DNA from: Ascidiella aspersa
Lineage: Eukaryota
Reading direction: 5' to 3'
DNA: 64,000 bases
Assembly (NCBI GenBank): GCA_963924565.1
Contig: OZ004615.1
Span: 7,316,001-7,380,000, forward strand
Position numbers and translations under genes: made by a program. Position 1 is the stretch's first letter. The number at the start of each line of letters is the position of its first letter. Of the stretch, positions 21,101 through 57,800 are shown piece after piece. The notes beneath the pieces are model-generated. The model saw only the letters and a list, made by a program, of their open reading frames with translations, ran no database searches and was not told where the DNA came from.

Positions 21101-22363
21101 TGCCATAAAGATAGTTATTTAATCATAAAAGAGAAATGCCGAGCATGTTTGCGTATATCTGTGGATTCTTTGTTGGTGAATTCCAACAAATTTTCCTGGA
21201 ATATGAAGCTGAAAAAGATATATTTTGGAACTTTCCCTGTTCGCCTATACGTAATCCAAAAACGGACAAAACTAAAAAAACGCTGTGCCGAACCTTGAAC
21301 CTTTTTGATAAGGCCGTTAGTTAGAGACATTAAAACACAGACGGGCGACTGTAATCAGCGCAGAGAAATATCCACTTACTGGCACTGTCGTTACTCGAAT
21401 GCGATCTGCCTCGATGAAGGCCGCCAACATCAAACGAACGAGGCACATAAAAAGTGCCATAAAATCGGAAACTGCGCAGTAAAACGAACAGCTGATATCA
21501 AAAAGCGATCGGCCTGCGTCAGTGGATCCAAGGTGACGAGTATGAATGCAATTTCAACAATGTTTGTTTTCGTAAGGCCTGGTGATCCACAGGACGTTGA
21601 TCCGCTCTTACTGGAAAGCCATAACTCGGTTGTTATAGCCCAGTTTTGCGACGCGGAATGGTTTTGTGATTTTTCTGCCTTGGCAACGGCTTTTCGTTGG
21701 ACACTTTTGGAGGCGTTTAAGGTGTGTGGCATTTAATTTTGAAAAAACAACCGTAAGTCGAAAAAACGGTCAGAACAGGCTGAAAACTTTTTAAATAGGT
21801 TTTTATTGTGTACACTGGGCTGGTGACTGACGTTTTTAGAATTTTGACATTTTTGAACGCAAATTAAATTAATCCTCGCCTTAGGTAAGCACTCCTAAAT
21901 AAATCTAAAAGATGTGGAAGTTTATACATAGATACTAACCGGCAAGGTTAGGCTCCATGTGTTTTACCAGACTCACTTTTTGTAACACCATTATCGATGC
22001 ACATTTCACTTCGTTAGTGAATGATTTCTATAATTCGGTAACAAAAAGTGCAGTAAACACAAATTACGAACGCAAAAAAAACGCAACTATAAAATCCATT
22101 GCACAAGAACTGTGAAAATTAAACAGACTGACAAAAAGCCAGCACGTTACATTTTTAAGCAGGTGGTCATACCTTAATGATTACTTCAAAAGTCCCAATT
22201 TGCAGTGACAATATTTTCCCTTAACTACACGTTGATCAATAATTAAAGCGTATGTACAACACAAATAATATCACACCAATCGGACATTTGATTAAAGTGA
22301 ACGAAACAGATAGTTTAACGCCTACGAAACAGATAGTAAGTCTTTCAAAAACCGACCACGCGT

Positions 22364-22692
22364 TTATGTGGGAGTGGGGGGAGTGGTTTCTCTCTGTTTT
22401 CGCGACCCGCGCTCTTTGCTCAAATCCCGAGCGGTAGAGACGGGCACCGTCCTTCCTCTGTTTGCTCTCTCGTCGACCAGCGCTGCTTCGCTGCGGCGTT
22501 TGTCTTCTTGCATTCTTTCGACGTCTTCCGGTTTGATTTCCATATTGGAACTTTCGTTTACGGGATTAACAACCCTTGTACTGATAGGCTCATCTGCCAC
22601 CCGAAACCGACTCATAACCCCACTCTCAATCAACTTGGGGGCCGCGGGAAAGGCTTCCTCCATTACCCAGCGAAAACTCGCCGGTTCTGGAC
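22364..22692 (-). CDS. LU-SMB protein terminal exon (charged low-complexity tail)
   Basis: AATCTAG| acceptor in phase 1 opens PEPASFRWVMEE...ETTPPTPT*; AATAAA (minus strand) near 21802-21807. Confidence 0.65.
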
Positions 22693-25600
22693 CTAGATTA
22701 ATTATGTAAATATGTGTTCGCTTATCGAATGAACTTTGCACCTGTTAAATTCTGAGAAATTAACTGAAATTGCTATTTAGGTTTAAACATGGAATTCATT
22801 TCTATTAAAAAACCTTTACTTAGATTTAAACTTAATAGTATTATAGAAAATTGAACAGCTTGTTTTACAGTGTAATTATATTACTTTTGTCTGAAATACG
22901 ACAGATAAGACTCGCTAAATGCAGTCTTGTAATGACTTATGTGAATGTTTTTACATTAAGTCTTTCGGGCAAAATTTTTTGAATTGACTTAAATCGTTTG
23001 TATACCCAATGACTTGACCGTGACAAGGTGATTTCTTGCAAAAACGTCTTTAAAAATTGGGTTATTTACCTAAATTGTCCATCTAAAACAGTTTGCCTTC
23101 TGCATGCTGCGTTTTTGTTTTTTATTGATCTATTTATTGCCAGTGATCGGACGTGTTAGTTTAAACTTCACTTTAATGCCAATGCCTCGACTTGCTATGA
23201 CTACGACTTGGTCTACGGCGGTCTTTCTTATCCTCTAGGTCGCGAACCACAAATGCGACGCCCTTTTTTGTTTGGGTCGCTACTGCAGTAGTTTAATACA
23301 TTAGTTTATTGGGATTTCTTCTAAGGAAGATTTCCAAAACATTTAGGAAAATTGCGGAAGTAATACAAAAACATGGCTCATGTTAATTAAATTGGTTATT
23401 TGTGTTTTGCTCGCGTAAAGTCTTAACGCTTAGAAAAACATTCAGTGAAGAGAATAGAGTCGCCAAGTCGCCAAGTCTTCGCGAGGTCTAATATTTGTGT
23501 CGCTGCGAAAAAGGTTGAGAAACGCTGGTCTACGGACTTGAAATTGTTGGCTGTTGGGGTATTTTGCAACATACTTGACTATGACTTAGTAATTTCTAAA
23601 TGACTTGTTTACCTACTGACAAAGCGGAAAAATCTCCCTGTCTTACCTTTGCATAGCTGAATGTGATCGTCGCAGCAATCTTTTTGCTTGACGCAATCGC
23701 TGTCGCAACGGCAAGCTTTGGACGACTCGCAGTGTTGGTTTTTAATGCAAGACGATGTCGTCTGACGTCTGCATTGGGGGAATCCCGGATACGTGGTGAG
23801 GCACGAGGCACCTGAACAGGCACCGAAAGGTGAAATGCACAGCACACAAAGGTGAAATCTTAAAACTCTAGGTGTTGGGTTGCGCAGAGGGTGAAGTACC
23901 TTCAGGGTCTTCGCGTATGTTTTTCCTAAAAAACTTAACCCAATATAGTTTGATTGATTAAAGCCGTGTTTCTCCTCCTCGTGTGGCTTGCTGCACCCCT
24001 CAGACACTCACAAATGAATTTAGGCTCCCCTACTATTGTCATAAAGTAATCCACTATAAAGTCACAATAAACGGAACTGAAAAGAAAATGACTCTTGACT
24101 TTACACAATGTAGGGCACATCAGCTGTGCAAAATGTAGGAAAATTCAATTTAAATGATTGTACTCTAATCATCGTACACACAGAGTTGTGAGACGCTTAC
24201 CAATTGAAGAAAAACAGATTCTGAAAGATTTCCAAATATTTCGCGGCACCCTTCAGCATTGGTAATGGCACCAGTGTGCCGCGGCAATTGGTTAGGAAGC
24301 ACTGGATTGAAGCAACACAATGCTCCGTTCCAACTTGAATGAGTTTTATTATAGTTTTAGGATTTTGTACCATTTTACAAATGCTACCTTCTTTAGTAAT
24401 CTTTTAACGTTTTAATTAGGGACGGTGGAATGATAAATAAAAAAAGTCCGTTCTGCCGAGTTATGTTCCTAGCACATGTTTTTAGTCATTATGTCAGCTT
24501 AATCGGCATCTAATTACCGGTTAATTCTAATCCCGAAGCAAATAACCAATTACAGTTGCCAATAATCGCATATTTAATACCCAGTCACGAGATACGGCTA
24601 TTTTTTCGGGGTCGTGGCCCTTCAAATATTCTGCCGAGCAAGTGTCGTGACCTCATTAAGTTCGTGTTGTCCTAACGTTGCTCCAGCCGCGGGTTACGAC
24701 ACAAATGCAGTCGGGCGCAATCACGTCGTTTTGCCGCATCGATGACAGAACAAATTGCATTATCTGGTGATTCAGCACTAACCATCAGAGAACATGCAAC
24801 TCCACGGCTTAAACTAAAGAAAAGAGCTCAGAGCTAAGAATTCGAAGGATTTAGATTAGAAAGCGGGATTAAAAAAGGTGAAAAACGGCGGCCGAAAAAA
24901 ACGAATATACCAAATGATGGCATGCATAGCTTGCCTTTTTTCTGTATGGACGTTAAACTTGGAAGCAAAATATACCACTGGTTAACATGTTGGCAAAATA
25001 ATCGTAGTTTGAAAAGTTTGGTCAAAAACGCGAAACAAGAATCTCGCAATTGGACCTATATGATTTGAAAACCGCTAAACTCCCTCTCTGGTAATTACGT
25101 TTAAATGTACATTTTCATATAACCAGAATACCACGTTACCAATAATTAATGTTCCATTAAAAAACGGACCTCTAAAAAATCATCACTATTCCTAAAAAGC
25201 GAGGTAAACACCCAAGCCACTACTAAAAAAAAAAAAAAAAAAATTTTTCTTTTCTTTCATAACGTTTTGTCATACGGTCCTTCTATTATATTAAAAGACA
25301 TCCTTATAAGGAAGAACAAACAAATAGCCAATACATCCTCACTGAAATTCTTTTTTCGCGTGTCCTCGAAAAAGTTGCAGTAGTCAACGTCGCAGCAAGA
25401 GTAGCATACGCCTCCGGTTAAGCGGCAAGATTTCCGGCCCCTTTGGAGCACCTCACACGATGGCTTGTGGGAACATCGCTTCGTAATCAGTCGAGCCTCG
25501 CCCTTTTGCACCACCCTGGTGAGGCACGACCGCTGCAAGAAACAAGTAAAGGGTTAAGCTTTGCTGTTATCGGTCGAAAATGGACGAAAATCGGTAAGGG

Positions 25601-28600
25601 GTGTTAGCTTGGTTGGCAGGGCGCCTAAACCTTGCAAAATATTCACACTCGTCATTCAGTGAAAAAGGGGTTTCATTTAGGGTATAGCATGAATCATAGC
25701 TTTAAGCAGACATTTTTGAACAGTTTGTGATTTGTTATCAAACCTTAACAGAAGATATCAAACCTTAACAAAAGAATCGTCGCTAGAGAATTGTGAAAAG
25801 TGGAGAACCGTGGCAAACATCTTTGCTGTAAGATTTTGGACAAACAAATTTGCTGAGATTATAGAGTAAAACGCTTTATCTTGTCGTTTTTTACTTTTAT
25901 TTATTTATTTGGCAATACGAAAGTACCTATATAAAAAATCGTAATTTCAAAGGATTATCTAATTCTTTTTCTAAAAATACTCTGTGGACTTCCCAGTTTA
26001 CAGACTGTAAACATACTTTCGTGGAGTTGAAATGATTTTATTATTTCACACAGATTACCACATAATAACTTTGCGTAACAAATCGTTCAAAAAATGTTTC
26101 AACAATTTTTTCTGTTAGTGTCTTAAGAATTTCCAAACTTATAGAAACCATTTACGTTCCACGAATCGTACATTCACCTGATTTGGATGACATTCGACAA
26201 TCCTCCCGACCTCGTTACATTGTTCGTTGCTGGAAGCATTCTCGCAGGTGAAGCATCGAAGGAGGGGCATGTCTCCACCCTTGCGAGTCTTTTTGTGGCG
26301 CTCACCCCCGGTTGTACCACCGTATTTATCCGGCATGCCTCTCGGTAACACGCCTTTAAAGAAGTCATATGGGTGTAATAGGATGCTCACAGTAACCCGA
26401 AAATCACATTTTGGAAAAGTGCCGTGCTTATGGTTTATTTTTTGTGGTAATTTTAATTAGGACTGCGGAATCGCAGTCGGACTCTGAACTCAGGACTTGA
26501 CAATGTCGGTTTGTTTTGATGGAGTTAGACTCGGGACGCGAGTAAGACTATACGTGTCCCTAATAACGCGCGCATGCGCAGTACCAAATTCAAAACATAC
26601 AAAACAACAAACTGCAATCTCTTAAGGGTAGAATAGCTTTGGAGGAGTGTTTTCCAACCACGTATTTGTATTACGCATAAATGTGTGGATTTCTGAATAA
26701 TACTCGTTGCAGAGGCGGAACCGGAAACGCAAATTTTAGATGTAAGTCCCGTGGCTTAACCTCAAACCTTGTAATGCTCGCGACGGAATCGATAAAAACG
26801 AAATGGAAAGTCTAAATTTGCCGGACTCTGGTGGTTTGTTTTAACGTTTCACACAACTAAGAAAATACCCAGACAAAACAAACGTTAACCAATTGTAGTC
26901 CCATTTTCCGAGCGACAAAAGAAATGGAAATATAGTTAAACGTTAGTAAAGAAGATGTTTGAAAGTTGATATGCAAACCCTGATGTCACAATTTTCGTAT
27001 GCAGTTTATACCACTTTAGCAAGCAGTTTAGCGCCGTTTCCTGTTGTCCTGCAACCCAAGTGTAAAGAAATGCAACAAAGCCCAAATCTTACACTGTTTC
27101 AAAACCGTAAGACGTAGTGTTACCATTGAAAATATTCGTAAGCGTGGGAAGCGATTCGGGCCGGTAAAATACAGTAACGGGAAGCTAATAACCCGGTTCT
27201 GCCGCAACATAATTGCAAGTGTTGGCGATAAGCGACTCCGGTGGAGAGTGGTACTTGGCCTTTTGGGGTTGTCGCGGGAAGCTCGATGCGCTGTACAAAA
27301 GGCCCTTCGCGTTTGGCAAACAAACAAAGATAAATCTGCGCGACTGTTTCACGGCAAAACACGCCTACGTGCAGCCCTGCCCATGCGTCTATATATAAAC
27401 GTTGGAATTTCAGCGGCCTTTATGGACTAAAACTTTTCAAATGCTAGTTTGCCTTTGTAAATATAGTTAAAGGAGAACAAAAATCACGAATATGTAACAC
27501 GCATGTCGCATATCCTATGAAGACTGAATGCTAAGATTTTTTCTCAATTAAAACTAAAAATTCAGTTTCTTTAACGCGGTGCTATACATAAAACTGTGCT
27601 GCCCATTTTACAAAACCGTTGTGAGACTGTTGTTCTTACCAGTATTTGACAAATAAGCAACAACTAAAGAACGTCAGTCATCACCTAAGGTGGAAGTTTG
27701 TGCCCATTTGCTCGCCAATCCTACACATAAGGTTAATTTCAATCAACCAGAAATATTGGGTTCACGGCAGGACAAATATCGTCTATATTTGCTGGAGTCT
27801 CGATGATCCAACATCACAAACCATAACTAAACATCGATATAACCATGGCACCTTTATATCTTTTTAATACCCAGCGGGACGCAATGAATCTTACATCGCG
27901 TTCGTTTTCTGCTATTTTTGGCAATTTTCTGTCTTTCTTTTTATGTTTTTTATCGCTTTTATCTTCACTTGTTTTCTTACGCTGATGATTGCATGAGGTA
28001 TTGCTAAAACGTCTGTAAAATGCGAAATGTCTATTTTATCGAATATTATGGCTTTAATATTTTCATTGAAATTACTAAAAAAACGTGTATTGTGTTCCAA
28101 AGGCAATAAATGTCTTCAATAATTGCTGGTAAACGGCGTTCAATAGGCTAGCTAAAACTTTTTATAATTTCCTTTTTCGGGGTTAAAATAACAGCGCTAT
28201 TCAACAATACGTACCTACGCAGACGTCGTGGAAGTCAAAGCAGCAATCTTCCTTTTCCACGCAATCCTTGTCACAGTGACATCCCAGGAACACGCCGGAG
28301 TCTGTTAAAAATCCACCTCTCTCCTTCCACTTTGGGTCGCGGCACCCAGGAAAGAAATGCGTACAGGATCCGCCTGTTGCAAGTATTCCTGTTGTTAAGG
28401 CTATATACACAGCGACCAACGTATTCGGGAACGCGACAGTTATTACCTAAAATCAGGTTGCTTTAAAGTTTACTAGGGGACTACAACAATATCTACACAT
28501 GGTCGGTAAATTACAAACTTTATTACGGTACTTTTATCAAATTCAAACTATAAATGCCTAACCCAAAATATTATCTTGGCAATCCAAAAATCGCTCAAAC

Positions 28601-31600
28601 TATGTGCCTGGTAATAACTCATTGTTTTACATGTACAGTTAAGTGTTTAGAAGTAACGGTCAGACATTTTTAGACAAAAGGCGTTAAAATCTACAAATAA
28701 AATTACGCTTCGACCTGTGAATATTATTGGTTGGCCTGACAAAGTCGATTTTAGTTTTTGTAATAAATTTTGTAAGCAATTTTTTTTGTTTTAACTTAAG
28801 CATTTTTTTGTTTTTGTTTAGAAACTTCGCGTATTTTCTAATTGAAAACGAATTTAATGTATTTTGAAGTGCATTTGTAATACCTTTAGTCATACCAATC
28901 AAATTAGAAAAATAAAGTGTGACTCTTCCACTAATATTGTTAAATATATTGACCGCAAACCAATCTGACCGCAAAATCTCACATATATGTAAAACCTTGC
29001 TCAAAAAAATCCAGCCAAAAAATTGTAACCCTGCTTTCAAACAAGAAGCACACACACACACACATTTATCAAACACTCACCCTTAGCGCTAAAGCTGGGC
29101 GCCGCTACCAGGTTGCAGTGATCGTATGAGCAGCAGTGATTGCACACCGAGTTGTCGTAGCCGTCGTTGCATCTTCGCTGCACCCTACCGCGCCAATCTC
29201 GCCCCGGAGCCTGGTTCTGGCGTCTTTGCACCGCGCAGGAGAGCGACTGCGAGCAGCCCTTGCGGATCTTGTAGACGCCGCCGTGCACGCGAACCTCCGT
29301 GAAGCAGACGTCCTGGGGGAAGGGTTCGCAAGAAATAGGAAATTTTTTCAGGGGTTGCATGATAATTTTGGATCGGTGCCGATGTGTTGAGTTTTATCGG
29401 TCGCGCTTAGGCATATGAACGATAGTTTTGGGCCTTATTTTGATAACGATAGCCTTATGGCCGCATAGCACTAAAGAACAACAGTTAAGGTATTTTGAAA
29501 TTGTTGGCGACGCAGCTGTAAACTACAATGCAGCTGTAACCTGCCTTAGCGTAAATCAAAAAAGTTAACTTAAATAAAAATTTTGTTTTTAGCTCAAAAT
29601 TTTTCATTAGATATCTTTACGTTTAGCAAAAGCTTGGTTGGATCGTTTACTATAGCTAAAATACTTTTTTTTTATTTGATGCTGGTTCGGCACCAATACC
29701 AATGTATTAGACTAGTATGTATATAAACTTGTATCGCATATCGGTTGCGATAGTATAATATAAGTGTTTCTATTTTTCATATTGCCATTCATCCTATTAT
29801 ATGAAAAATCGTGGTCAGTATAGTCCAACAAAAATAGTCAATATCTGAACATTTTGCCTTGTTATAAATATGTAACATATTAAGGTCCAATAACAATTGG
29901 TTATATTTATGTTGTCAGATTGGACTAGATTCAAATCTCAATTTTTCTTATTTAATGAAACATTCACACATATGTGTGTTAATAACTGAGATCTAGCCCT
30001 TCATTTTTTCTTATTTTGTAATTTCATCTTCGTAATAAAAAATAGTTGTTATCAGATTGGACGGCCCTACTTTTCCGAATTGGGAAGGTATCGATTATCC
30101 CTAAATAAAAGTATTCCTGAGCTTGACACGACAGGTAATAACCTTACGCCGTGCAGGGTGGGGACAAATTTCCTGAATGGTGGTAGAACGACGGTTCACG
30201 TAATGAACATTGAAGAAAATACCAATCGAAATAACATTTAGAAAAAACAGCTCAGGCTCACAGACATCACAAGGTAAACAGAAACATATGTACTATTGTT
30301 AAGGCCTAATCATTTGTTCAACTATACTTATCATACAAAGATTTTTACAATACGTTGGTGTTTCTGCTTTACAAGTGTCTTATTCAATTAGAGTAAACAT
30401 AAAAAAGACACATAATAATATTAATAAAAACGGTGTTATGATGCGCCATTCTGTTCCGTTGGGAAATAAGGAGCGAACAACCTGTTGACCTTTCAATATA
30501 AACAAAAAAACTTTTCAAAGAGATATTTTTGCAGGCGACTCATATGGCAAAATTTTACACGCATAGACCTCGACACATTTTTTTTGTGTGTTAAAATTTG
30601 CACAAGAACGTTGGTATTTGAATTGAATTGTGCGAAAAAAGCTGAGCTGCTGACAGCCAAACATGACAGACACCAAATTGGCATTAGCTGGAACCTAATC
30701 TATGTAATTTTAAAATGATATCGAGCTTTGGCCTTTGTCTAGCGATAACTATCGGCGGTCTCCAAGCCAGCAAGTGCTTTTTGTTCCATCAGTATCGCTT
30801 ATAAATAGCTTTCACCTTTGAAACAATACACAGAGCAGGGCCACTTAGCGGTTTCAAAAGAAAGGCATTTTGCCTTAAGGTTATTTTGCTGCAAAATAGC
30901 GTGAAGCCGAAGAGCGTGTAGTTAAAACAGTTTCCGCGTCTTCGTTCTTTGCTAACTTAATTTAAAACGTTTTTTTTCTCGGCGTTATTCTACAACTAAA
31001 AGCTTAACATTTTACGTCTCTACCAGGAGCCCAATTGGTCCTGTTTTCTAATCTCTAATTTGCTTTACTGCTACGTAAGCAACAATTAAAGATTTTGGTT
31101 CCTGGTTGAAACTTGATCATAAAACAACAGTTTACCTCTGTTAACACACTAACTAGTAATGAAAGCTCGCGACCCTTTGCAAACGAGAGCGTTTTATACC
31201 CAGGTTCTCACTTATAGACTCACCCCTATAATCTCGTAATTTCGAAAATGAATAAAATGTTCACAAACAAAATAACAGGACCGAAATAAAATTCCCCGCT
31301 CAGATATGAAATGAGAAACACTAAGGTGTAAAACCGCAAAACCAACTAACACGTTAATATTTCAGTTGGGTGCCATCACTTTCTGTAAAACGTATTTAAA
31401 CATTTTATACTACAAAATACTAACAAATACCCTCGATACAGTTACTTTACAATTAGCAAGGTAGTGTGGTAGTAATGTGCGCGATAGGGATTCGGGATTT
31501 TTCGTGTGTTATCGATATTAGATTTCTATCAGTTTTGGCAATTTCAACGAACGGGCGCGCCAACAGATTGCAATTTGGCAGCGGACCAAGGTTTAAACAA

Positions 31601-34600
31601 GCATGGGAGATCAGTCGATCACAATCTTGGAACGAAAAAGCAAGACTTCATGACTTTTAACGTCCCTGAATTTGTGAATCACGCCCGAGACCAAAACCGG
31701 TTTTGTCGCCATGCGAAACGTGTAGCGATGCTAATGGAGATTACGTCTTGTCCTTTGTTTTCGCCACATTTTGTTAATCAACTGCAATATAGCAAATATT
31801 ACACTTTCGGTAACATTTAGTATTGATTAGCGCATGGAAAATACAATTGCCTTCGTTTGCCAAGTTTGAACGCGGTTAAAGAGTTTAAGCACAGTTTTGG
31901 ACGTTATAGTATATCGTCATGCTTTCGTGTGTATCTAAACGTCACGCCGTATAAAACGTCACGCCACAAAACAAATATGCTGCATTAGCACAGGGCTGGC
32001 TACAGTTATACTGTTTGACTCGGAAGTCGAAACCTGTATCGATTTGTACGATTATATTCATACAACGAATCTCCTTAGTTAAAAGTACTTTTTTTGTCGT
32101 TCGTTACGGTATATCCTACTAATTATAATAGAAAACTAGACATATAATTCGTTTGAAATAACTGACAATGCAGTTCAGGCGGTGGAAGTACAATACGTTT
32201 TATACCGGAAACATGAAAATATTTATACCGGTATCAAATTTTTCAGAGATGGCGTCACAACGTTACGTCATAACTATAGAAGTCTTAAACAAGTAACTTT
32301 AGGTAACCTGAGGTCGTTCGATGTTGTGCACATATGTCTAACAGAAATCTTAGTTATAATACATTGAAGGAAATAGCGGGATTTCCTGGTCAAAAATGCC
32401 AAAAATATTTTTACGTGTAAAAAATATTTTACCGAAAAGCCATTCCGGCTTACTTTCACTACTGGTACATTTTCTCACAACTTACTGGACCGTGATGCGA
32501 TAAAAGTAGGAGTGGCAAATAAGCCACACTAAATTGTCGTTGCCGTATGTTTAGATAAGAATTATTCACAGTAAAACTAATTAATACCTATATTATTTAC
32601 TTAAATTCTTGTTGTGCCTGTTTCTGTAATTCGGTTATTATTATTTGTACAACTGGTCATGCGTTTATTTCTTCTGATACTCGAAATTTGGGTCTACAAA
32701 CAGGCATTGTTATAGCTTAATATTCTTTGCAGATTAGGTTGTTTGCCAACTTGAATGAGCTACCATTGCATGTGTGACATTTATATAGTTTAACGTGCTT
32801 TGACATCCTGAATATGACATATATACTACGTCCGACACGACGTAAGATTACACAGCGGATCAGTAGGCTTACATATAGCAGCAAGTTATTTGCATTATAT
32901 ACATGACCGGTGAATTAAGGCATTATCGTTTCGAGGACACAAAGCCTCCCTTTGTACCTATACTTTCGCAATAATAAGCAGAACAGAATCCGTGTAAAAA
33001 TCGTGCCGCGATTAACCAAACTTTAAATGGAAAATTTACGTTAGTTTGTTTCTGAGTTCCCCACTGGCAATATATATATAAGGTCCACATGGCCATAGGA
33101 TACATTTAACTTTTTTTTGGAAATGAACAATATTCTAAAGTCGTCTTTTTATGTTGTGTCGAAAATAATATTTTTTCTAAGCAATTAAACGACCTTACGC
33201 GCATTGCAGCCTATATTCGTTTTTTTAAACGATAAAGTTGCAAAATATTTTTAAAGGATAGTCTTCAAATTACAAATCTTAACAGAATTTTTACGTCAGA
33301 CTTGCATTAATGCAATTTTAAAACAAAGTACCTCTATCTGACACAGCTCTATAAGAAACGTGAGTGGTATATTGGCTAGTTTTGTTAAATGAAAAAAACT
33401 TTTTCAAAATACGCATAATTTTTGTATTATGCTAAACCAAACCTATGCGAAGCAGCTCAAAAGTTCACCGCAAAATATTTCCGCGAGTAAAAAATATTTC
33501 GATCAAAAAATTCCACACATTACCCGAAGCAACGTAACCTATCGAGCAATCCGATAATAAATTTCATGTTTATTATTAGTAATGTTCAATATTTTATTTG
33601 TTGGGCATGTGTGTCAGTCCCTGACGAAGGCTTGCCGTCTCGTAAGCCGAAAAGTTGTTTAAGAAGTATATGCCAGCAGGACCTATTTTAAATATGCTAT
33701 GCCTGGTAGCCACAGCATATTTATTAATGTTCACTGTTCCGTAATACTCTGATGTGCAGAAAGTGGCCCAAACAGGGTAAGACCTATACTTCATATGAAA
33801 GCAATGGCCCCATAACTACCCGAGTTAACACAAAGATTTTTATTCAAGATTTTTACATACAAAAACTTATTGCGTCAAACTTTAGTATAGTGGTTCTCAA
33901 GCGGGTTACCGCGGCACCCTTGGGTGCCATTCCTAATCCTCAAGGCTGCCGCAAAATAATTGAGAATCTTTAGGAATCTGATTTTAGCTTAACTCTTACA
34001 ACTTTTTGAGTAAGATTAGAGTTAAATAAATCCAATTATAACTTCCTGCGTTGTATCGATCTGATGTGTGTTGTTACAGTTTAGTTTATTGTGACATTCT
34101 AGTAAATTACCTACGGAAAAATCTGATAGGGGTGCCGCAACTTATTTATTATTTCTTAAGGGTGCCGCTATCCATAAAAGTTTAAGAAACACTGTTTAGT
34201 ACATCGTAAGTTTATAAAATCACAGCTTAAGTTAAAACTTTATCAAAAGTTGCAGTTTAGATTTACATCCGACAATCATTTCCAGTAATAAAACACTATT
34301 ACAATACGTATTTTAGCTTCACAAAGTCAATATGCGGCGCGCCGGCAGATTTTAACCCCACAAGCCGTGGTTAGGGGAAAACTCTGCTCAACGTGTTCAA
34401 TATCCCAAACGCACCCCCCAATCGTTCGCACACAGATCCGACGGAATTACGTCAAACGCCAGTTGCACTTTCTCCCTGTCATCGTTCGCTTAAGCCTCAA
34501 ACGCGATCTGCGTGGCGCGCGGCGAAACCCATTGTGTCTAATCCGATAATTGTATCGTCCACTTAGCGCCAACAGGTGACACCGGCACGTTCAATCCTAA

Positions 34601-37600
34601 CCTATTCGAAGCGTTGAAATGCTAACGACGGATCGACGGCCTTTAATCGTCGGCCACATGAAACCAGCGTCCGCTTCCGAGCTCTCGATGACGCGTCGAA
34701 ATCGTGTGACGTCATAGCTCGGTGACGACCGGTGTCGCGACCGTGCCCCGGTAATGCCTGTGACCTACATCGGGCCAAAATGCCGGACAACCTTGTTTAC
34801 GCGTAAAGGCTGAATTGTTTGAGGTCTCGTCTCAGTGATGTTTTAGTTCGGCAACAGGTGCGCTATTTCTCCTGTTTTTAATGCTGGGGTTTGGTGCGGT
34901 GGAAAAAAATGCGTGGAAGTTTTCGATGACGTGAAAAAAAAACAGACACGACCTTTTGAAACCCTGCTGAGCTTTACATCGGTTGCGACATTTAAAACAA
35001 CTAAACAAGCTCACCAAAATCATTAAATTTGACTGTAAAAACATTATACAATCCTTTTAGGGGTCCGCGGTAAGAAAAGCTTAAGAACCCATGGTCTAAA
35101 TCAGGGGTGGGCAACGTTCGGCCCGCTTTTCCATTTTTTGTGCGGCCTTTCACCTTCTTCCAGCTATTTTCCCTAAATAAGGCTATAAGTGTGCACCATG
35201 TTGGGACTTTTGCTCTATCAGTTTCCCGTTTGACGTGCGATGTAACCCATAGGCTACACCGCAATGCTAATGTAGTTGAACTCGAATGGGAGCATCTATT
35301 ACAAAACAATCTTCATTCATAAAGTTTAACTGGTGTCGCGTTGTTACGATAAAGAATTGTTTTGCAACAATTACACTTGTCTAGTACGGTCAAGGTATAT
35401 CTGACTTTTGCCACGCATATTAACTGAGATGGTATGTTTAACAGCTGGTTTTGAATTAGGGCTGTTAATTAAATTGTACTCAGCCGACCCGTACGAGAAA
35501 GGTGTCGAAAAAAAGTTATTTCCGAATCCACAAGTAGGTTCTAGACAGCACTGACAAAACTGCCGTAGTTGCAGCCTATTAGCTCATTAGTTTTGCTAGT
35601 AAAAGCTGAAAATATGAATTGATGTTTATTTGATGTGCGGCCCTCCTGTAAGCATTACATTTTCATGTGTTGAAAAAGGTTGCCCACCCCTGGTCTAAAT
35701 AGTGTACAAACTTGCTGTGTGATACAAGAAGGTATCTGGAAAACAATTCGTGTCTTAAATATTGAAAAATGTATACTGTATAACTCTTCTACGCATAGTT
35801 GTTAAGAGGATGACATCACATTCTTGTTTACGCCAAGTAGGTCACGACTTTTGTCGTACTGTCGAAACCGACAGTCTACCACGGGGTTCGTTAAGACCAT
35901 GACGTAATTTGTATTCAATATGGTGTTAAATGGTCGTTAGGTCGTATAGGTTTAGAAAATGTTTGAAAAATTAATTTAGGTGATTTATTACCATAATCGG
36001 TCCGAAAATGCATAGCTTGAACGCTTCGTATGTAATAGATCTCCGACAGGCAATACAGTACAAAAGCGTAAATTTTAGTTCAATTGTTATGCCAGATACG
36101 TGTCACATTTCGAAAACTTTCAATATACTTAAATAATACCGCAAAGTTTTTATTTTACTTTTTTCTAATAGTCATTGCAGCTTTTGCCATTTTTGCTTTT
36201 TAAAAACAAATAGTGTAACAGTTTAACTCTATAAAGAATCGTATACAAACAGTGCTTAAATCAGCCATAAAAATTGGTGCTACATTGACCTGAATATAAA
36301 TTTTAAATGATTATTATTATAGATAAGCTGTTCTCAACCAGTGGGCCATGGAAACTTTTTAGATGGGCCACAGACCAATTTTAAAAAGCTAGATTTATTG
36401 AAGAATTTAGTTTCATTTGTGTCACTATACCTAATTTTACAGGAAAAATGGCTTGGGGAGGAATTGAGTAGGAATGTAAATGAAATGTAAATTTATTGTT
36501 ATAAGCTTCGCTACATTTTGTTCTAAACCTTTTTATAGTTTGTCCATTCGAAAAAATGTTTTGGGCCACAGAATTTATACAACGAAAATGGCCCACGAAA
36601 GAAAAAAGGTTGAGAACCACTGTTATAGATAATGATTATTATTATAGATACAAAAGTTATTAAACTTAACATAGTAGAACACAACGGTGCCCTGACGCTT
36701 ACCTGGTCAGAAGCGCACTTTCGCGTGGTTCCTCGCATATTGCATTCGTGGTTGCTTTCTGAAGATGGACAGGACACGCATTGGATCGCTGAAAACGCAA
36801 CGAACAAAAATTCTACTTTTGGCAAAATTAGAAAAAAAAATGATCCAATTGACTATTAAGTGTTTACCGAAGTGCAGTTGCACTTGGCCAACTTAAGTAA
36901 CTTTTTATATTTTCGGGTTTTAAAAGAACAGGTCTGCTAGTATTTATTCGCATTGATGCAACCCCAAATTGACTTGATTTCTTTAAACCAACACAAGATT
37001 GAAATATCGACAATACGAACAACTTTATTTTCTTACAATAGAACAAGAACCCATGAGGGTAAAATCGCCTTCGGTTGTCCCAAGACTAAAAAATTGATAT
37101 TTTTTTATCCAAACGCTAGATAAACTCACTTAACAAGTGAGGAGCAATTCGAATTGTGCCAGCATTTTTCGCTGTGTGAATCAAACCTGCCTTAAATCGC
37201 CAAGTGTCATATTTTCATATTCAGACAAATAGGGATAAATGTTTAAGCACAATAGATCCCCCTTGACCTCCAAATCGACATTTAAGAGTTAACCATTACA
37301 GTTAAGCGGCGTATTCCCTGATCCACGCATTTAGTTACATCCATAGCTAAAGCGGTGTACTAGATTCCTATAACAGGTTAAATCCATATTGGCCAACGTC
37401 TCGCTCAGAGGCGCTTCGCAACTATATATCATGAGGTAATAATACCCTTAATCGGATCAGAAGACAGCAGTTCAATCCTTGGATTTAGTGTCTCGAAAAT
37501 CGTGGCCGACACGGCCCGAAAACCACATTTGTGTGCAAGGAAAGATACGAATTTGAAAGTTCGCTTGTGAGTAAGCGGGCTCGCCTGCGACCATGTGTAC

Positions 37601-39144
37601 ACACCAAGCTGTGATGGGTGAAAAGGTTCATTCTTTATCGATTGCTTAATGTAAACGCCTTGAGATGCCGACCCGGCAATTTTCCGGCTCGCACCGATAT
37701 AATTGTTTGGCTGACACTTCTATACGAAACGGAACTGTTCTATACACGATTTACCAAAACTATGTAGTTTGTTGTTGCATCGGTCAAAAGCTTCCTGCAC
37801 GGCTATATTGACTATTTAAATCAGCCAAACGTGGATTGTTTTACGGACTCAAGAAACTGTTGTGGTTTTGACGATGTGGATGAAAACCATTTAAATTACA
37901 CAGCCTGAACTTCCCAAATAAACTGGTTTCCGTTTATTATTAACCATATAAATTTTTCCTTTATCATTAGTTCAAAACTTTGAAAGTTCTTTATCGCCAG
38001 AGTGAATGTACTGCAAAACAGGTATAATTCGCGCTTAAAAAGCGTCAGAATGCTGCAGTGACGTGCTGTGTTTTTTGTCAGGCTGCAACCGTCGGCAGAG
38101 CTTATCGGCAACGAAATCCCGCGCCACGTGTTAAGAAACCGAACTGACAACTGCTGTGCCCTTCAAACAAACACACGTTGGCTAGGTGCCCTTCACTGTG
38201 ACTCACAACTTGACCTTAAAGCAGCAACCCGCTTCCTAAACTTCGGCTTATATAGACAAAAGCGTCCGACAGAGAGCCCTTACCAAGGGGAATTACCGTC
38301 GTATCTGATTCCGCGACGAATTCCGCGCGCTTTTTGTTTTTTTTTAGTTGCAAGAGATGCCCGCGCTGTTCTTTCTCAATGAAGTGGATCCGACTAGTTT
38401 GCGGTTGCAGCGATTGTTTCGTGGAAACCAATTGGATCGCAAACGTGCTTTTTTACCTGACATGTTTGTTTTTGTATGCCGAGTAAGCTTATCTCGACCT
38501 AGAAAAACCGCTATTTCCAGTATGTTGAAAACAAAAATTAATGAGCTGCTACCTAATCAAAACACGTGTTCAACAATTATAAGAAAACGATGTACTCGAC
38601 TAACACTCTTTACTGGACATAAAACAACAAATCCATTTTGATTTTGAATGCGTATTAATCCACTGGTCTGCAGCAATTTGACCTACGGCTTAATTGGTGG
38701 CAAAAAAGATCATAAACCTGGCTGAAACCTACAAATAACATCAGCGATTAAATACATAAGGTAAAGTTTTAAATAAGCTCTAAAATTTAAAGCCTACACT
38801 ACCGTCTAATTGATTATTCAACATGATTACAATTTGTAGTCCCATTGAAGCCTAATTAATATATTTCTGTACATCGCAAGAGTTCACTAACACAAATATA
38901 CAGCATCGCCAGATCTCTGTACAATAAATCTGAACAAAGTACAAAAACTTTGGAAAAATGCCACAACAAGAAAAAAAACTATATGTATTCGAAATGTGAT
39001 AAAAGGCATTTTTGACATTGTAAAATACCAACCGTTTGTGCTGGTGAAGAAAAGCAAAATCGCAAATCCGCCGCAGACTAAGCGCCTTTGAAGAAATTCC
39101 CGCGCAGCAGTTGGCTTGAAGTGTCGAAATTTTCCCAAATCCAT
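22364..39144 (-). CDS. Secreted protein with two Ly6/uPAR (three-finger, LYPD6-like) domains alternating with two somatomedin-B domains; about 487 aa
   Basis: Exons 39033-39144 (signal peptide), 36703-36788 + 29081-29312 (LU1), 28215-28388 (SMB1), 26178-26353 + 25343-25532 (linker + LU2), 23647-23811 (SMB2), 22364-22692 (tail). Phases 1,0,1,1,0,1,1 are all compatible. LU domains start C-x2-C and end CC-x4-CN. SMB domains show C-x-C-D-x2-C-x4-D-CC-x-D-x4-C. Confidence 0.8.
23219..23527. mobile_element. Non-autonomous hAT MITE inserted in a GACTT-rich element
   Basis: Right TIR AGGTTGAGAAACGCTG, decayed left TIR; perfect TSD GTCTACGG. Confidence 0.8.
23647..23811 (-). CDS. LU-SMB protein exon 7 (SMB2)
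   Basis: ASCLTTYPGFPQC...ACRCDSDCVKQKDCCDDHIQLCK; TGTTCAG|...G|GTAAG. Confidence 0.87.
25343..25532 (-). CDS. LU-SMB protein exon 6 (LU2 C-half)
   Basis: RSCLTRVV...LITKRC...CYSCCDVDYCN; TTCTTGCAG|...A|GTGAG. Confidence 0.87.
26178..26353 (-). CDS. LU-SMB protein exon 5 (basic linker + LU2 N-half)
   Basis: ...RHKKTRKGGDMPLLRCFTCENASSNEQCNEVGRIVECHPNQ; donor CAG|GTGAA. Confidence 0.87.
28215..28388 (-). CDS. LU-SMB protein exon 4 (SMB1)
   Basis: GSCTHFFPGC...GCHCDKDCVEKEDCCFDFHDVCV; acceptor either 28388 or in-frame 28373; donor G|GTACG. Confidence 0.87.
29081..29312 (-). CDS. LU-SMB protein exon 3 (LU1 C-half)
   Basis: DVCFTEVR...IRKGC...CNHCCSYDHCN; CCCCCAG|...G|GTGAG; GC-rich coding composition. 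Confidence 0.9.
33888..34194. mobile_element. Non-autonomous hAT MITE
   Basis: TAGTGGTTCTCAA...TTAAGAAACACTG; flanking TTTAGTA direct repeat; GGGTGCCGC subterminal repeats. Confidence 0.8.
35102..35692. mobile_element. Non-autonomous hAT MITE
   Basis: TIR CAGGGGTGGGCAAC...GTTGCCCACCCCTG; perfect TSD GTCTAAAT. Confidence 0.92.
36325..36622. mobile_element. Non-autonomous hAT MITE
   Basis: AAGCTGTTCTCAACC...GGTTGAGAACCACTG; perfect TSD TTATAGAT. Confidence 0.85.
36703..36788 (-). CDS. LU-SMB protein exon 2 (LU1 N-half)
   Basis: IQCVSCPSSESNHECNMRGTTRKCASDQ; TTTTCAG|...CAG|GTAAG. Confidence 0.85.
39033..39144 (-). CDS. LU-SMB protein exon 1 (signal peptide)
   Basis: MDLGKF...RRLVCGGFAILLFFTSTN; donor G|GTTGG joins in phase 1 to give TNA/IQC, a plausible cleavage site. 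Confidence 0.65.
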
Positions 39145-51800: not shown

Positions 51801-54800
51801 ACGCTGCGCGTAAGTGTTTTTCGTCTTTCTAATATAAGAATACGTCATGTTTTGGCGTAACTTTTTGACGTTGTTCCTTAACGTTACTTGTGGCGTCACG
51901 ATTTGCTTTAACTTTGTGACTACATCGCTGAAATTCTTGTTAGTCACGCTTAATACTAAATTCCTGGATCAGCCCCTGCTTCCGTGGTCAACATATATTC
52001 TAAAGCTGTAGGTTGAGAAACGTCAAAGGTTTTCTATCGAGTTCGTATTGACATAGCTTTAGAAAATGGATTTTGCTTCCGTTTAGTTTTCTTTTCCCAA
52101 AATATAAAGGCATTTTTTATGTATAGTATCAGGGATGTCCAAAACTTGTTTTTTTTATTCCGAATGCGATCCCCAATAGTTTGGACTAAAATTACAGCGA
52201 TCCGATACTAAATGACGTCATTACCATCGCCAAAGTAAATTTCATGTGTATAGCAATTTAGGGATGTCTGATACTTGGTTTAAGTTTACCTTGAATAGGT
52301 AGCACTCGCTGCTTTGTATCGCAAATCGTACCCATATCAATTTAGTATCGGATCTGCACCTTGGTATCGGGTATGGCCTACGCTCTGCTATTTTTGGATA
52401 TCCTTATATAGTATAGGTTTGTAGTTTTTTGTCTCGTGTTTTACCTGTTTCTCAAGCCTCTTGTCGAAGTAGGAGTACAAATGCGTGTCGAGCGAATTCC
52501 ACGACCGAATCTGTTCTCTCATTCTTTTAGTCAAGGTTTGTTTTACCGCTTGCTGGCGCACTTTTAGGCGGATGTACAAAATGTCGTCGTACGAGTCCAT
52601 GCACAACATGTCTATAAGAGAAATATTAGATTTTTTAATCGTTTTTTTGGTAGTGGTACTTAATCACGTCAAAAGAAGGAAAATTTCTCTACGCTGCACA
52701 TATTAAAACGAATAAGTTATTTCCAAACATGACAAAATTGGTTTTAATAAAATACTCTTTTGCTTCAAGAATAAAAGGTCTATTTTTACAGGTTATCTTT
52801 AAAATAAAGGTAGCCTATCACATATGCGTTTTAACCTATATGTTTACTTCACTGAAATTTTACTTATATATTTAGGTTCTAACCTAAGTAAACCAGATGT
52901 TTCGACAAAATCAGATGTTTTCGATTATACCGCTTTAAGCTGTGTTTTAATCTTCTATTTTCCGTCTTAGCTTATAGATTGCTGCAGTTCTACTTACTTA
53001 AACACGTTCATAGAACTATGGGATACGGACATAAATCATAAATAAAATAATAATCTGTAGTAAATTTAAATAACAGTAATATTGACCCTAACTCTAACAT
53101 ACGCCCCGCCCCACAAAACTATGGCAAAACAAAAAAAATCGTGGAGACCAAAAACACGCTTGAAGGCCAAAGAAGGAAGTTTTAACACGATATAAGCCAT
53201 CCGCAGGTATAGCGTGTTCTAGTTATTAAACCGACCTTTAAGTAGTATGAGCGATTCGTCCAGCTTTTCCGTAATCATAACGAGGTCGAACCACTCGTCC
53301 ACTTTCAGAATGGCGTTTTTCGTGTAGTAAGCGTCGCTACGGTCGTTGTCGAAACCTGGAGATCGGGAGAGTGATTATATCGCCAGTTGAAAGTTTAACG
53401 CTAAAAACTGGTCGACTTGAAAATTTATTTTACTAAGGCGTTGATTTGACCTAAACCAAGGCTTCCCAAACTTTTCAGTCAGCGACTTATTTTAATTTAT
53501 TGAAATTTTCCGCGAGGCCTATAGGTTTAAGAGTTTAAATCAGGACATTTTTCGTTTGTTTGCTTTGGCACGCATTTCTTGAAGTAATTTGCATTAAAGC
53601 GATTTGTTTTGCATTAGGTTTGCCATGAGCATCTTAAACAGGAAGAACTAACATTTTTATAGATGTGTAACACTTTGTATAAAAATCATACGCACTTACT
53701 CGCGACCCCTTAAACTCGTTGCACGACCCCCAGTAGGGTCCGAAAATTTCCCAGTTTCACAAGCTCTGACCTATACCACCGAAAACTCGCTATATACCCA
53801 AAATGTAGTGTTTCTTTCCACATTTCTTTTAAATGCATAAATATTATTACACCTGAGTACCTATAGCTGTTAACATGGGCAATTTTAGGTAAATATCGGT
53901 TTACTATAAATAGCGTGAATTTAATTATCACCGGCTTTTTTTTTTATGCGAATAGGTTTCATTTTAAAGTTACAAAAAGGTTTCGCGGCACTCTTGAGCA
54001 GTGGTCGGCAACCGCCGGTCCGCGAGGAGTTCGTTACCGGTCCGTGGCAGGGTTGCCAGATTAAAATTTCGTTTTAAACCCAAACCGTACGTAAAATTTG
54101 GAAAAAGGCTAGGAACAGTCAACAACGATTGAAAGTATTTTTATATCCAAATCACATTAACTTTCGTTTGAATATAGTCCATGGTTAATTGGTATATCAA
54201 AAATCTCAATTAGTTTCAAGCACTCGTGAGGTGCAAAACAAACCAGTGAGCTGTGGCCATATCGAGCACTTTCACAACATCCTAAAATGCAATTTTGATT
54301 GTAAAATCTAACTCCTGTACAATATATCGAAAAAGGGCCAAAATATCATATATTTTTTAAGCTTAACCGTGTTCACCCTAAAGTGCAATAGAATCAAATC
54401 ATGCAAACAATGTCCCACAATAAAATTAATTATTATTTTTATGTTCAGGCAGAAAAGTTTTTAAAAACAACGTATGCATTTGAATTCTTTTATTGAAAAA
54501 AGTTGTAATAAATTTCCTTTACTATGCATTTGTTGTTTTTTTAAGGCCGGTCCGCGAAAAAATTTCAGCTTTAAACCGGTCCGCAGTGTAAAAAAGGTTG
54601 CCGACCCCTGCTCTTGAGAGTCTCTCGAAGCTAGCCCGTGTCCCGTGTCACATAGTTTAAAATCCACTGCCTCAAACGTTATACAAAATATCTAAAATCG
54701 CTGTTGATTTCTTGTGGGGTTAAATAAAACCTCACCAATCGAGCATTTGCCGACCCACCCAAATCGAACGCCTGGTAGTTCTTGGCGCGGAAGTACCACG

Positions 54801-57800
54801 GGGTGGACGTGTTATAGTAGATATGGGGCCGGTCCAGGAATTCCTCGAGGGCCTGGTACGACGGGGCGTCCTCAAGCCAGTCAGTGAAGGGCCAGTCCCG
54901 GAAAAAGGAGAATCCCGATTCGAAGCATTCGCCCGGCTCTCGCAAGATTGTGATGTAAAGCGAGTTGTCGGGAACTACTCTTCGAACCTTGTTGCGATTG
55001 AATCTAAGGATTAGAAATATGCAAGGTTTGAGTTTACGCGTAACATTATGGAAGCACTTGATGATTACCAAGGGCGACAAATTGAGCTCCAGGACAGAGA
55101 AGAATGCAGGGGAGGACACAAAACCATTTATCCCATACTATTTAGTCTTTTAAATTTATATTGTAACTCTACCCCCAAAACTCTACAAAGTGTATTCTTC
55201 TCTATCTCTGTACTAAAGTGTAATTTTAATTAATTTAAGACTATATAAATACCGTTATCTCAAGCGATGTGCGAATCTCCACGATTTGTCTAATGCGCCA
55301 AGTATTATTTTAAATTGTGTCAAATTTAAACCAAGTAGGAGCTATTTTTTTGTCCCTTCGCGCGATCAAAATGGTGTTTTGATGCATATTAGTACACAAG
55401 TTTGCACAATAACAACAACTGTTTGTAAGATTATTTGTGTTATGACTAAACCTCTGTCCTTTTCATATGCTCCTTTAAAAAACATCAATGACGGCCAATG
55501 TAAATTAGTCTATGAACATCTTTGCACTTTCGCAATATAAAAATTCCTTTATCAAAATTAGCCTGAGTTGTTTGCTTATCGTTTAACAAAGGTAAACAGT
55601 AAGCTAAATAACATAAAACAAAAAGGCAAAATTTCAATAAACAAATTCAGGCATATTTTTATTCGTGATCCGGAGGCCACTAGAGTAAGTCGGCACTCTC
55701 AAACGCCACCAAGCGGAACTTAAATCCTTTTTCAGTACAACATGTTTTGAGTCATAAGACTTTGTAGGCCGTGTTTGAGTGCTCTGAATTGCTACTTTTT
55801 TGTTACTTTTTGCGGAAATACGACCGTGCTGATTGCAAAAGAATAATTAATTGACGAAAAGCTAGATATAACGTTAACAGGCCCACAGTTAGCAAATCGA
55901 GTTTAACCCTGAAAGAAACTCTTTCCTTCATGAAAAATAAAGAAAATCTCTATTGAAAAAAAATAGTTTATCTATATAATGAACTGTATATTTTATATAT
56001 CTTAATATGTATTTATACAGTACAATCCAAGCACCAATAAGAGCGAAAGGGCATAAACATAATGATAAATACAATAAAACTAGAAATATATAAGAATAAA
56101 AACTGGACACCGTGCTCCAAGATTTTATTCCTAAAATAGTATTTCAGCAATCATCCAAAAATGATGTAGAAAAGAATTAAGAAAGGGTATTTGTTAGATG
56201 GATAATATACTGCTTGAAGTTTTATGGCACCATGACATGACATATGCCATGCAGACATTTAAATCTATCATTTCTTATTACTTCTTATCGCCATTGCTTA
56301 CCTTATGTGGTGACACAGAACGTCGTATTTTCGCAGTTGAGGATCTATAATGGCGGGGTCAAAGGGTGCCGGGTAACCACCGAGTTCCCAACGACGCTCA
56401 GGGGGCAGGCCAACGATTAGTTGGCGCTTTTCAGCGTGACGTAGCAAAATGTTGTTGACGGTCGTACTTCCTAAAATCAGTAACCGAAGTTAGTGAATAA
56501 TTAAGATATGGCCATTTTACAATCTTTTATTTTACCATTTGACAATATTTTTCCGAAAGTCGAGCCACAAGGAATTAAACTGTATCTAAACTGAATAAAC
56601 GTTTTTGGCGTTGGATACCTATAGTAATTAATGCTGCCGAGTTATACGTTATGTTGAAGGTTTTTAAGAAATCGCAACGAAACTTTTATAAACTGAGTTC
56701 CTTTAAACACCCTTATATGTGCAGTTTAAGATCGAGGATATAAGTTCTGTATTGCGAACATTTCATCGACCAAGATGTTATAAAACACGTTTTTTAGAAA
56801 ACGTGAATACCATTTTGATTGCATTTTGTTAGCGCCATGTTGATAAACGTTGGTCATCTTATATACAACTGCACAGGTCACTAACGCGCAGCTTCATGGC
56901 TGAAAGCCTATAGCTAAAAGCCAACTTACCGGTTTTGTGAGTTTTGACGAAAACCAAGCCTTCCCTGGCTACGCACTTATCGCTCTCAGCACCGGCCTTT
57001 AATTCACTTTGTATCGAAGCTATCTCTTGATCGTCAGCTGGAAGTAAAAAGCTGTTAATGCCTGTTTCCTAGACTTTTGGTGTCATTTAAGGGCAATTGA
57101 CGATACGCCTACGAAATGCGTCAAAGAGGTTTAATCCCTCTCCAGTTAGGTGTGGTGCTTTTTTTAAACGCAAACGTTTGAAAGATACATAATTTTACAT
57201 CTCTTGTTGATTAAATTACGAGTATACCTATGTTTATAGAATATGGTACAATTAATATAATTCAGAATTTCGCGATTAGTGTTTTCTTGCTGCGAGTGTC
57301 CACACACACTTTACGGGAGATCATCAACTATACTCATCTTTTTCAAAATTTTAATGAAGTATTTTTTTCGAAATAAAAATTAGACTAGATTAATAGTTTT
57401 CCATTGATTTTCCTTCGTTTGATATATTCTGACTGAAAACCTCTGTATTATTTAGACTGTTCGTCAGAAAATCCAATAAACCAAGGGTATATGCAACCGG
57501 CTGCCCGCGGGCCAAATCAGGTCCGCACACTGCTAATATGTGGCCCGCGGCAGGCTTTTTACGAATTTCTTCGAATATGTTTCTACTCTCTTAAAATGGC
57601 TTTAGTATAGTACCTGGCAAATCCCGTGGCTGTAAAATGGTCATTTGTTCAACATAAGCGGGTAAGTTTCAGTACTGAATAATAAACGCAGTTAGAACTG
57701 AGTTTTCCTGAACTTAAGGCCGATTTGGTCGGTGAGAAATACGTTTGGACCGTAATCTAATCCACATGAGGCCAGTTAGGGTGGTCTGGATTAATATATT

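Follow-up and report, generated by a model that had tools for sequence, protein, structure and literature searches.

To our knowledge, the Ly6/uPAR (LU) and somatomedin B (SMB) domains of vertebrates meet only in trans, as in the uPAR-vitronectin pair, and the question raised by the locus described here is what is meant by a gene in which both modules alternate, twice, in one chain. The locus lies on the minus strand of a stretch of 64,000 nucleotides of the ascidian Ascidiella aspersa (contig OZ004615.1, positions 7,316,001 to 7,380,000), which is called the window throughout and contains no N. It is considered that the best overall explanation, with a probability of about 0.72, is an ascidian LU-SMB gene encoding a soluble, bivalent extracellular binder. 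Within this explanation the single-copy, eight-exon gene, its architecture and its orthology to Ciona intestinalis LOC108950825 and Clavelina lepadiformis LOC143468150 are regarded as very probable, and the specific mode of action, namely that of a soluble binder or adaptor of receptor ectodomains, is a tentative suggestion drawn from analogy.

Structure of the LU-SMB gene and its orthologs

Eight pieces of open reading frame (ORF), designated e1 to e8 and read from 39144 down to 22364, join into a reading frame of 1,464 nucleotides (Table 1). All seven introns of the gene have GT..AG borders; their phases are 1, 0, 1, 1, 0, 1 and 1, and the start phases of e1 to e8 are 0, 1, 0, 1, 1, 0, 1 and 1. 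The encoded protein of about 480 amino acids would comprise a signal peptide, LU1 (two exons), SMB1, a linker, LU2 (two exons), SMB2 and a charged tail. This order of modules had been proposed in the original prediction, made from the letters of the window, and it is upheld by the GT..AG sites, the matching phases and the collinear orthologs.

The protein of the window was searched exon by exon, and whole-chain analyses were carried out on the database orthologs of Ciona and Clavelina. A full HMMER scan with e3 (phmmer, 1.84 billion representative proteins) gave five matches in all, the first being Clavelina lepadiformis LOC143468150 (E 7e-18, 60% identity) and the second Ciona intestinalis LOC108950825 (E 1e-12, 50% identity). 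The Clavelina protein (XP_076821276.1 / CAK8672920.1) has 472 amino acids, with an isoform X2 of 448, and the Ciona protein (XP_018672495.2 / XP_078488958.1) has 411; both are annotated as "uncharacterized" or as SMB domain-containing predictions, and both have the module order of the window gene. tblastn aligns the two orthologs with e2-e7 in collinear order, and with no other part of the window. Since two database ascidian proteins share the module order and align in this collinear way, the architecture is far beyond chance. Identity to Clavelina is 59% in e3, 52% in e4, 59-60% in e5, 44% in e6 and 49% in e7, and identity to Ciona is about 43-47% over exons 3-6 (about 47% in e3); these alignment identities cover e3-e7, and MAFFT with all eight fragments misplaced e1, e2 and e8. 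The exon e2 is matched by tblastn to residues 26-55 of Clavelina X1 and residues 28-62 of Ciona LOC108950825.

Support for the splice junctions is comparative. With a slash at the exon border, the e2-e3 junction reads PQ/DVC, as in Ciona and free of indels, and the e5-e6 junction PNQ/RSC matches the orthologs, again with no indel. The junction codon of e4-e5 restores VCV-G-VLPR, as in Clavelina and likewise free of indels, and the e6-e7 junction gives NF-S-ASC, equal to Clavelina and with no indel. Beyond SMB2 the motif W-[IV]-[FM]-x-E follows after a run of nine residues in each of the three species; in e8 it takes the form W-V-M-E-E, nine residues past the last cysteine of SMB2. The orthologs resemble the window protein in the cysteine framework, in SC-x-FP-x-C before each SMB core and in an N-x-S sequon before SMB, whereas they differ from it in signal peptide, linker and tail. 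Moreover, SMB2 of Ciona has 8 cysteines versus 10 in SMB2 of the window protein and of Clavelina, and the sequon before SMB1, present in the orthologs, is absent from the window protein.

A side observation concerns the Clavelina isoform X2, which in comparison to X1 is devoid of 24 residues that correspond to the last four cysteines of LU2 (C-x2-CC-x4-C-N). If real, this isoform would break the second three-finger domain, and it looks like the product of an alternative donor inside the exon equivalent to e6.

Table 1. Exons of the LU-SMB gene in the window, in order of transcription (a slash marks the exon border)
Exon	Encoded part	Position	Strand	Details
e1	predicted signal peptide	39033..39144	-	ATG at 39144, 37 codons + 1 base; donor G/GTTGGT, phase 1
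e2	LU1 N-terminal half	36703..36788	-	4 Cys, CxxC first; acceptor TTTTCAG/, donor CAG/GTAAGC, phase 0
e3	LU1 C-terminal half and short spacer	29081..29312	-	8 Cys, ends CCxxxHCN; donor G/GTGAGT, phase 1
e4	SMB1	28215..28388 (or 28215-28373)	-	8 Cys; phase 1 to 1
e5	linker and LU2 N-terminal half	26178..26353	-	4 Cys; phase-0 donor, position as in e2
e6	LU2 C-terminal half and spacer	25343..25532	-	8 Cys, ends CCDVDYCN; donor A/GTGAGG, phase 1
e7	SMB2	23647..23811	-	10 Cys; phase 1 to 1
e8	charged tail	22364..22692	-	108 amino acids, 19 K+R, 19 D+E; stop TAA 22364-22366

The first exon shows a basic n-region followed by the h-region LVCGGFAILLFF, with a Kyte-Doolittle value of 2.67, and is one of just two candidates within 9 kb upstream of e2 that combine ATG, phase 1 and hydrophobicity. 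The exon and the e1-e2 junction should be treated as candidates which rest on sequence logic. For e2 a second phase-compatible acceptor would place the start of the exon at 36812. Upstream of its acceptor the frame of e2 continues for 23 open codons, and tblastn aligns the resulting peptide to the signal peptides of the orthologs; this in-frame hydrophobic, F/L-rich stretch (36789-36860, minus strand) was considered as an alternative signal peptide and rejected, as it has no ATG and stops lie immediately upstream. It is probably a translated polypyrimidine tract.

In e4 there is a long loop between Cys2 and Cys3 and a core CxCDxxCx5CCxDFxxxC; the acceptor at 28373 is favoured over that at 28388, 15 nucleotides further upstream, because of the AK-xx-SC spacing of the orthologs. 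The linker of e5 is rich in Gly and in Lys/Arg and about 30 amino acids long, and the N-terminal half of LU2 bears one NAS sequon. At the end of the spacer of e6 stands a conserved N-F-S sequon, completed across the e6-e7 junction. The exon e7 begins with the motif SCLxxYPGFPQC, common to SMB1 and both orthologs, and continues as a near-canonical 8-Cys SMB. Downstream of the stop codon the first AATAAA is found 556 nucleotides away, at 21807.

The tail encoded by e8 is for the most part disordered and is free of hydrophobic stretches (the best 15-residue Kyte-Doolittle mean is 0.67 and the last 20 residues average -2.06). Given the h-region in e1 and the lack of any such stretch in the tail, the encoded protein is predicted to be secreted, with neither a transmembrane segment nor a glycosylphosphatidylinositol (GPI) signal, and the absence of a membrane-type end that had been claimed before agrees with these values.

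Three pairs of exons are homologous to each other, e2 to e5 (E 2e-5), e3 to e6 (E 5e-6) and e4 to e7 (E 1e-6). From this homology, and from the recurrence of the same intron positions and phases, it follows that the gene arose by duplicating in tandem a cassette of three exons (LU N-half, LU C-half, SMB) with both outer phases equal to 1. In its own 308.6-Mb genome the LU-SMB gene is single-copy and e7 has its sole copy there; within the window no other LU-SMB cassette was found by tblastn with the orthologs. Single modules occur elsewhere in the genome, where LU half-exons have at least 25 candidates and SMB exons lie at about 8 loci. Clustered weak matches to LU half-exons at C5:29.32-29.50 Mb and C8:21.35-21.54 Mb suggest tandem arrays of LU genes, and the closest LU paralog (C3:12645444-12645808) has its half-exons about 80 bp apart and no SMB nearby. 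Six SMB exon matches within 2.3 kb at C3:18670978-18673273 (plus strand) point to a gene of a multi-SMB protein, and a two-SMB locus is placed at C9:18037239-18037972.

A word-index search of 5.8 billion proteins with the Clavelina X2 protein and a two-sequence profile returned nothing beyond two ascidian clusters, and a search of the literature for the LOC and accession numbers of the orthologs and for the co-occurrence of LU and SMB found nothing relevant. The LU-SMB-LU-SMB architecture is a real, rare and undescribed combination of two familiar modules. It had been stated earlier that no named protein of this kind was recognised, which is still so, given that the two "uncharacterized" ascidian orthologs alone emerged from both protein collections. 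By its sequences the family has so far been found in ascidians alone (Ciona, Clavelina and the window species). The proteins of the window species itself are missing from both collections.

Types of LU and SMB domains and the uPAR-vitronectin pair

Each LU domain contains 4+8 cysteines (e2+e3 and e5+e6) and ends in CC-x4-CN, in line with the cysteine framework of the LU superfamily (CxxC near the N-terminus, 8-12 Cys overall and CCxxxxCN at the C-terminus); SMB1 has 8 cysteines and SMB2 has 10. Both LU1 and LU2 are interrupted between Cys4 and Cys5 by a phase-0 intron, and two exons per LU domain are typical of vertebrate LU genes. The canonical spacing of the SMB is C-x3-C-x9-C-x-C-x3-C-x5-CC-x6-C. 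In SMB1 and SMB2 the Cys3-Cys8 core is canonical and the first loop is enlarged (SC-x6-9-C); the gap between Cys2 and Cys3 of SMB1 is about 20 residues, leaving profile positions 16-39 alignable.

HMMER recovered the proposed domains in part. With Pfam Somatomedin_B (PF01033) e4 scores 26.6-28 bits, above the cut-off of 23.1, and e7 scores 22.8 bits, marginally under it, over profile positions 2-38; SMB1 reaches 34.5 bits for the SMB profile in the genome scan, and in the orthologs two stretches score 34-39 bits. The two halves of LU2, in contrast, match complementary ranges of the LU profiles (e5 positions 1-29), each below the cut-off: UPAR_LY6_2 gives 17.7 bits on e5 (positions 8-29) and 20.4 bits on e6 (positions 43-90), Toxin_TOLIP 16.1 and 17.5 bits, and UPAR_LY6 15.3 and 15.7 bits on e5 and e6 respectively. 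In the orthologs the whole LU2 passes Toxin_TOLIP with 25.0 and 23.3 bits at a cut-off of 21.2. A PF16975 scan of the gene's own genome had no match and missed even LU2 of the window; where domains are split, it thus carries no information.

A profile of the two orthologs was searched against PDB sequences. The best relatives of LU2 were LYPD6 (6gbi, E 3e-6), LYPD6B (6zso, E 8e-6) and LYPD1 (E 3e-4), and all 12 cysteines of the ortholog LU2 align with LYPD6; uPAR was absent from the list of sequence matches. With LYPD6/LYPD6B (6gbi, 6ib6, 6zso) there are in common a 12-Cys LU, the three-finger fold and a domain start of the form F/L-K/R-C-F-T-C-E-x-A-x-x-N-x-x-C-N, whereas those vertebrate proteins have one LU, a GPI anchor and no SMB and the window protein has two LU domains, each with an SMB, and no anchor. 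By their sequence both LU domains are assigned to the 12-cysteine LYPD6/LYPD6B type.

A model of the Clavelina ortholog was built with AlphaFold2 (AF2) from a 7-row alignment, with a mean predicted local distance difference test (pLDDT) of 46.5 and a predicted TM score (pTM) of 0.28. LU1 and LU2 have pLDDT of 63-81, and a helix is predicted in the tail. Foldseek on this model gave uPAR as the top match (E 9e-4), aligned across both LU domains at a root-mean-square deviation (rmsd) of 17-18 A, and single-domain matches to Lynx2 (TM score 0.69, rmsd 3.1 A), Lypd6b, PSCA and snake toxins including erabutoxin. Structural look-alikes in the ESM Atlas were mostly of LU families; the ESM Atlas feature search yielded no usable match. 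It follows from the model of the Clavelina ortholog that the LU domains have a predicted three-finger beta fold. Modelling of the chain, which had been put forward as a way to see contacts between LU and SMB, delivered the LU domains but no confident interdomain packing and no confident LU-SMB geometry.

As to the SMB domains, the ortholog profile relates SMB2 to EndoU (E 2e-4, precisely 2.3e-4), to ENPP1 (E 0.036) and to vitronectin (E 0.2) among PDB sequences, and the core of e4 matches the first SMB of snake-venom phosphodiesterase and of ENPP3 with E 1e-4 to 1e-3 (best 1.4e-4). The cores of ENPP1-3, snake-venom phosphodiesterase and EndoU (CxCDxxCx5CCxD[FY]xxxC) are the most similar ones, and both SMBs of the window protein combine a core of ENPP/EndoU kind with an enlarged N-terminal loop peculiar to the family (SC-x6-9-C). 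In ENPP1-3, venom phosphodiesterase and EndoU two SMBs stand directly in tandem before a catalytic domain, whereas the window protein has an LU ahead of each SMB, lacks a catalytic domain and carries the enlarged loop at the start of its SMBs.

The original prediction had treated the gene as a Rosetta-stone fusion of receptor-type and ligand-type domains. In this explanation the LU domains would bind SMB in the manner of uPAR and vitronectin, either in cis, giving a closed, auto-inhibited chain, or in trans, giving head-to-tail polymers or a matrix network. The vertebrate complex (3bt1) shares with the window protein the same two domain superfamilies and several LU domains per chain, and uPAR is among the fold matches, which include the vitronectin complexes 3bt1 and 3bt2; further, three ascidian lineages have kept LU and SMB side by side, duplication took in the LU+SMB unit as a whole, and the short spacer from LU to SMB carries a conserved N-glycan sequon. 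In the vertebrate pair, however, LU and SMB reside on separate proteins, uPAR is GPI-anchored and the binding site is a composite of DI and DII. The affinity of uPAR for the vitronectin SMB is weak (dissociation constant 2 uM) and the site is built from DI, DII and the linker (PMC8417595). Arg91 of the uPAR linker packs against Asp22 of the SMB, flanked by Phe13 and Tyr28 (PMC8417595). The aspartate of CxCD is retained in the SMBs of the window, as in SMB cores generally. In the vitronectin numbering that we assume here, SMB1 has Lys and SMB2 has Gln at the position equivalent to Tyr28, and the re-modelled, enlarged N-terminal loop takes the place of the Phe13 region.

Further points argue against such self-binding: the LU domains are of LYPD6 type, no relation to uPAR was found at the sequence level and the Foldseek alignments to uPAR have the large rmsd given above, the SMB cores resemble ENPP/EndoU and are weakly related to vitronectin, the SMB1-LU2 linker is not conserved in Ciona, and the pTM of the AF2 model is low. 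The fused modules are not counterparts of the interacting vertebrate pair, so the Rosetta-stone inference is weak and the link to uPAR-vitronectin is not borne out; self-binding of this kind is considered improbable. A related proposal, in which each LYPD6-like LU docks on the neighbouring SMB, in cis or between chains, and which would mean LU-SMB recognition outside vertebrates, is held to be very improbable.

Transcription and integrity of the gene model

About 6% of one RNA-seq run of the same species was mapped on 23450-29400, that is on e3-e7, and gave 14 reads. If a repeat within an intron and a single further intronic bin (depth 0.16) are set aside, RNA depth is confined to the bins of e3, e4, e6 and e7, with the highest depth of the gene in e6. 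The reads of the exon bins all have their first mate on the plus strand, which in usual stranded libraries is the sign of RNA from the minus strand, and for 9 of the 14 the fit is only partial, as expected of spliced reads. The gene is probably transcribed at a low level in the sampled library. As a check of the proposed junctions, the reads agree in being exon-restricted and of one orientation, but no junction was seen among them.

The repeat mentioned above lies at 27800-28110, in the intron between e5 and e4 and about 100 bp from the e4 donor. It is of high copy number: the word depth in a DNA run climbs from about 59 to 340, 1,956 and 9,909, and loose ends and variant joints are numerous. 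Part of the 14 RNA reads fall there, on both strands, and include an opposite-strand joint 28032/28077; the repeat is probably an expressed element of the short interspersed or foldback kind.

Several observations weigh against the favoured explanation of a secreted LU-SMB binder and should be set out together. The exon e1 has no similarity to the orthologs of Ciona and Clavelina, and e8 compared with the Clavelina tail by BLASTP is not significant (E 0.87). In the 14 RNA reads of 23450-29400 no splice junction appears at the listing threshold of three reads, and no read falls in the bins of e5. LU1 has no Pfam match in any of the three species (window species, Ciona, Clavelina). For UPAR_LY6_2 the Ciona protein reaches 28.3 bits and Clavelina X2 16.6 bits, below the cut-off of 31.5, and a place in the LYPD6 subfamily is therefore not secured. 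The SMB modules of the AF2 Clavelina model have pLDDT below 35 and are unreliable. Finally, the functional part of the explanation is analogy.

Some of these points have an answer in the data. LU1 is placed in the LU superfamily because of its homology to LU2, the same 4+8 cysteines and the fold, and e8 is supported by its phase, its spacing and the W-[IV]-[FM]-x-E motif, in spite of dissimilar tails. The points on e1, e8, the junctions and e5, together with the weak donor of e1 (GTTGGT), would be expected if the model were an artefact in which two adjacent LU+SMB genes had been joined across e5, the exon that bridges the two cassettes, or in which the hand-picked e1 or e8 was wrong. Against this, the models of Ciona and Clavelina join the cassettes via a homologous linker and e5 shares 59-60% identity with Clavelina, the codon at the e4-e5 junction reproduces VCVGVLPR, no start codon or signal-like exon is found between e4 and e5, e5 begins in phase 1, and the W-[IV]-[FM]-x-E motif stands at the same distance after SMB2 in three species. 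An artefact of the gene model is thus exceedingly improbable.

Possible function, neighbouring genes and meaning of the family

The favoured explanation pictures the protein as a soluble, non-enzymatic, bivalent extracellular binder, putatively glycosylated. Receptor ectodomains would be the targets of its two LYPD6-like three-finger domains, and the SMB knots together with the tail may serve as rigid spacers or as second docking sites, for example, on the model of ENPP2, for partners in the matrix or of integrin type. Among LU proteins the secreted forms are generally regarded as diffusible modulators, whereas those with a GPI anchor work at the cell surface. The affinity of LYPD6 for LRP6 and for nicotinic receptors is micromolar (PMC8494132). 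It is the analogy with LYPD6 and with secreted as opposed to GPI-anchored LU proteins on which the receptor-binder proposal is founded.

A different use of the same chain would be as a structural secretion, a component of the tunic, the egg (vitelline) coat or the larval adhesive, in which the disulfide modules and the tail cross-link or bind matrix. The family is found in ascidians alone in the protein collections searched, the product is predicted to be secreted, Cys-rich and putatively glycosylated with a charged tail and a predicted helix, and low RNA in a single library fits a restricted tissue or stage; all this would suit such a role. Structural secreted proteins, however, are often repetitive or multi-copy, whereas this gene occurs once and contains no repeats of low complexity; nor was homology noticed with any known protein of tunic, vitelline coat or adhesive. 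A structural secretion is therefore unlikely, and the soluble binder is preferred.

Other genes were noticed in the window. Beyond the 3' end of the LU-SMB gene, two ORFs at 4935-6083 (minus strand) match the sodium/bile-acid symporter family PF01758 with 42.9 and 27.9 bits and look like exons of an SLC10-like transporter. An ORF at 54679-55119 (minus strand) matches galactose-3-O-sulfotransferase PF06990 (68.9 bits, positions 132-222), and one at 61210-61539 (plus strand) matches thiopurine S-methyltransferase PF05724 (71.6 bits, positions 8-82), being probably the first coding exon of a TPMT-like gene.

The significance of the locus lies in a chain of alternating LU and SMB domains that was both preserved and duplicated as one unit among the invertebrates most closely related to vertebrates. 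If the protein is an ordinary secreted binder, the value of the finding would be mainly that of annotation, naming a family labelled 'uncharacterized'. Ciona LOC108950825 offers a tractable handle for asking whether LYPD6-type soluble modulators occur in tunicates and whether LU and SMB have an intrinsic affinity for each other. Should the pairing of LU with SMB prove true, the family would give a handle on the origin of such recognition in the sister group of vertebrates.

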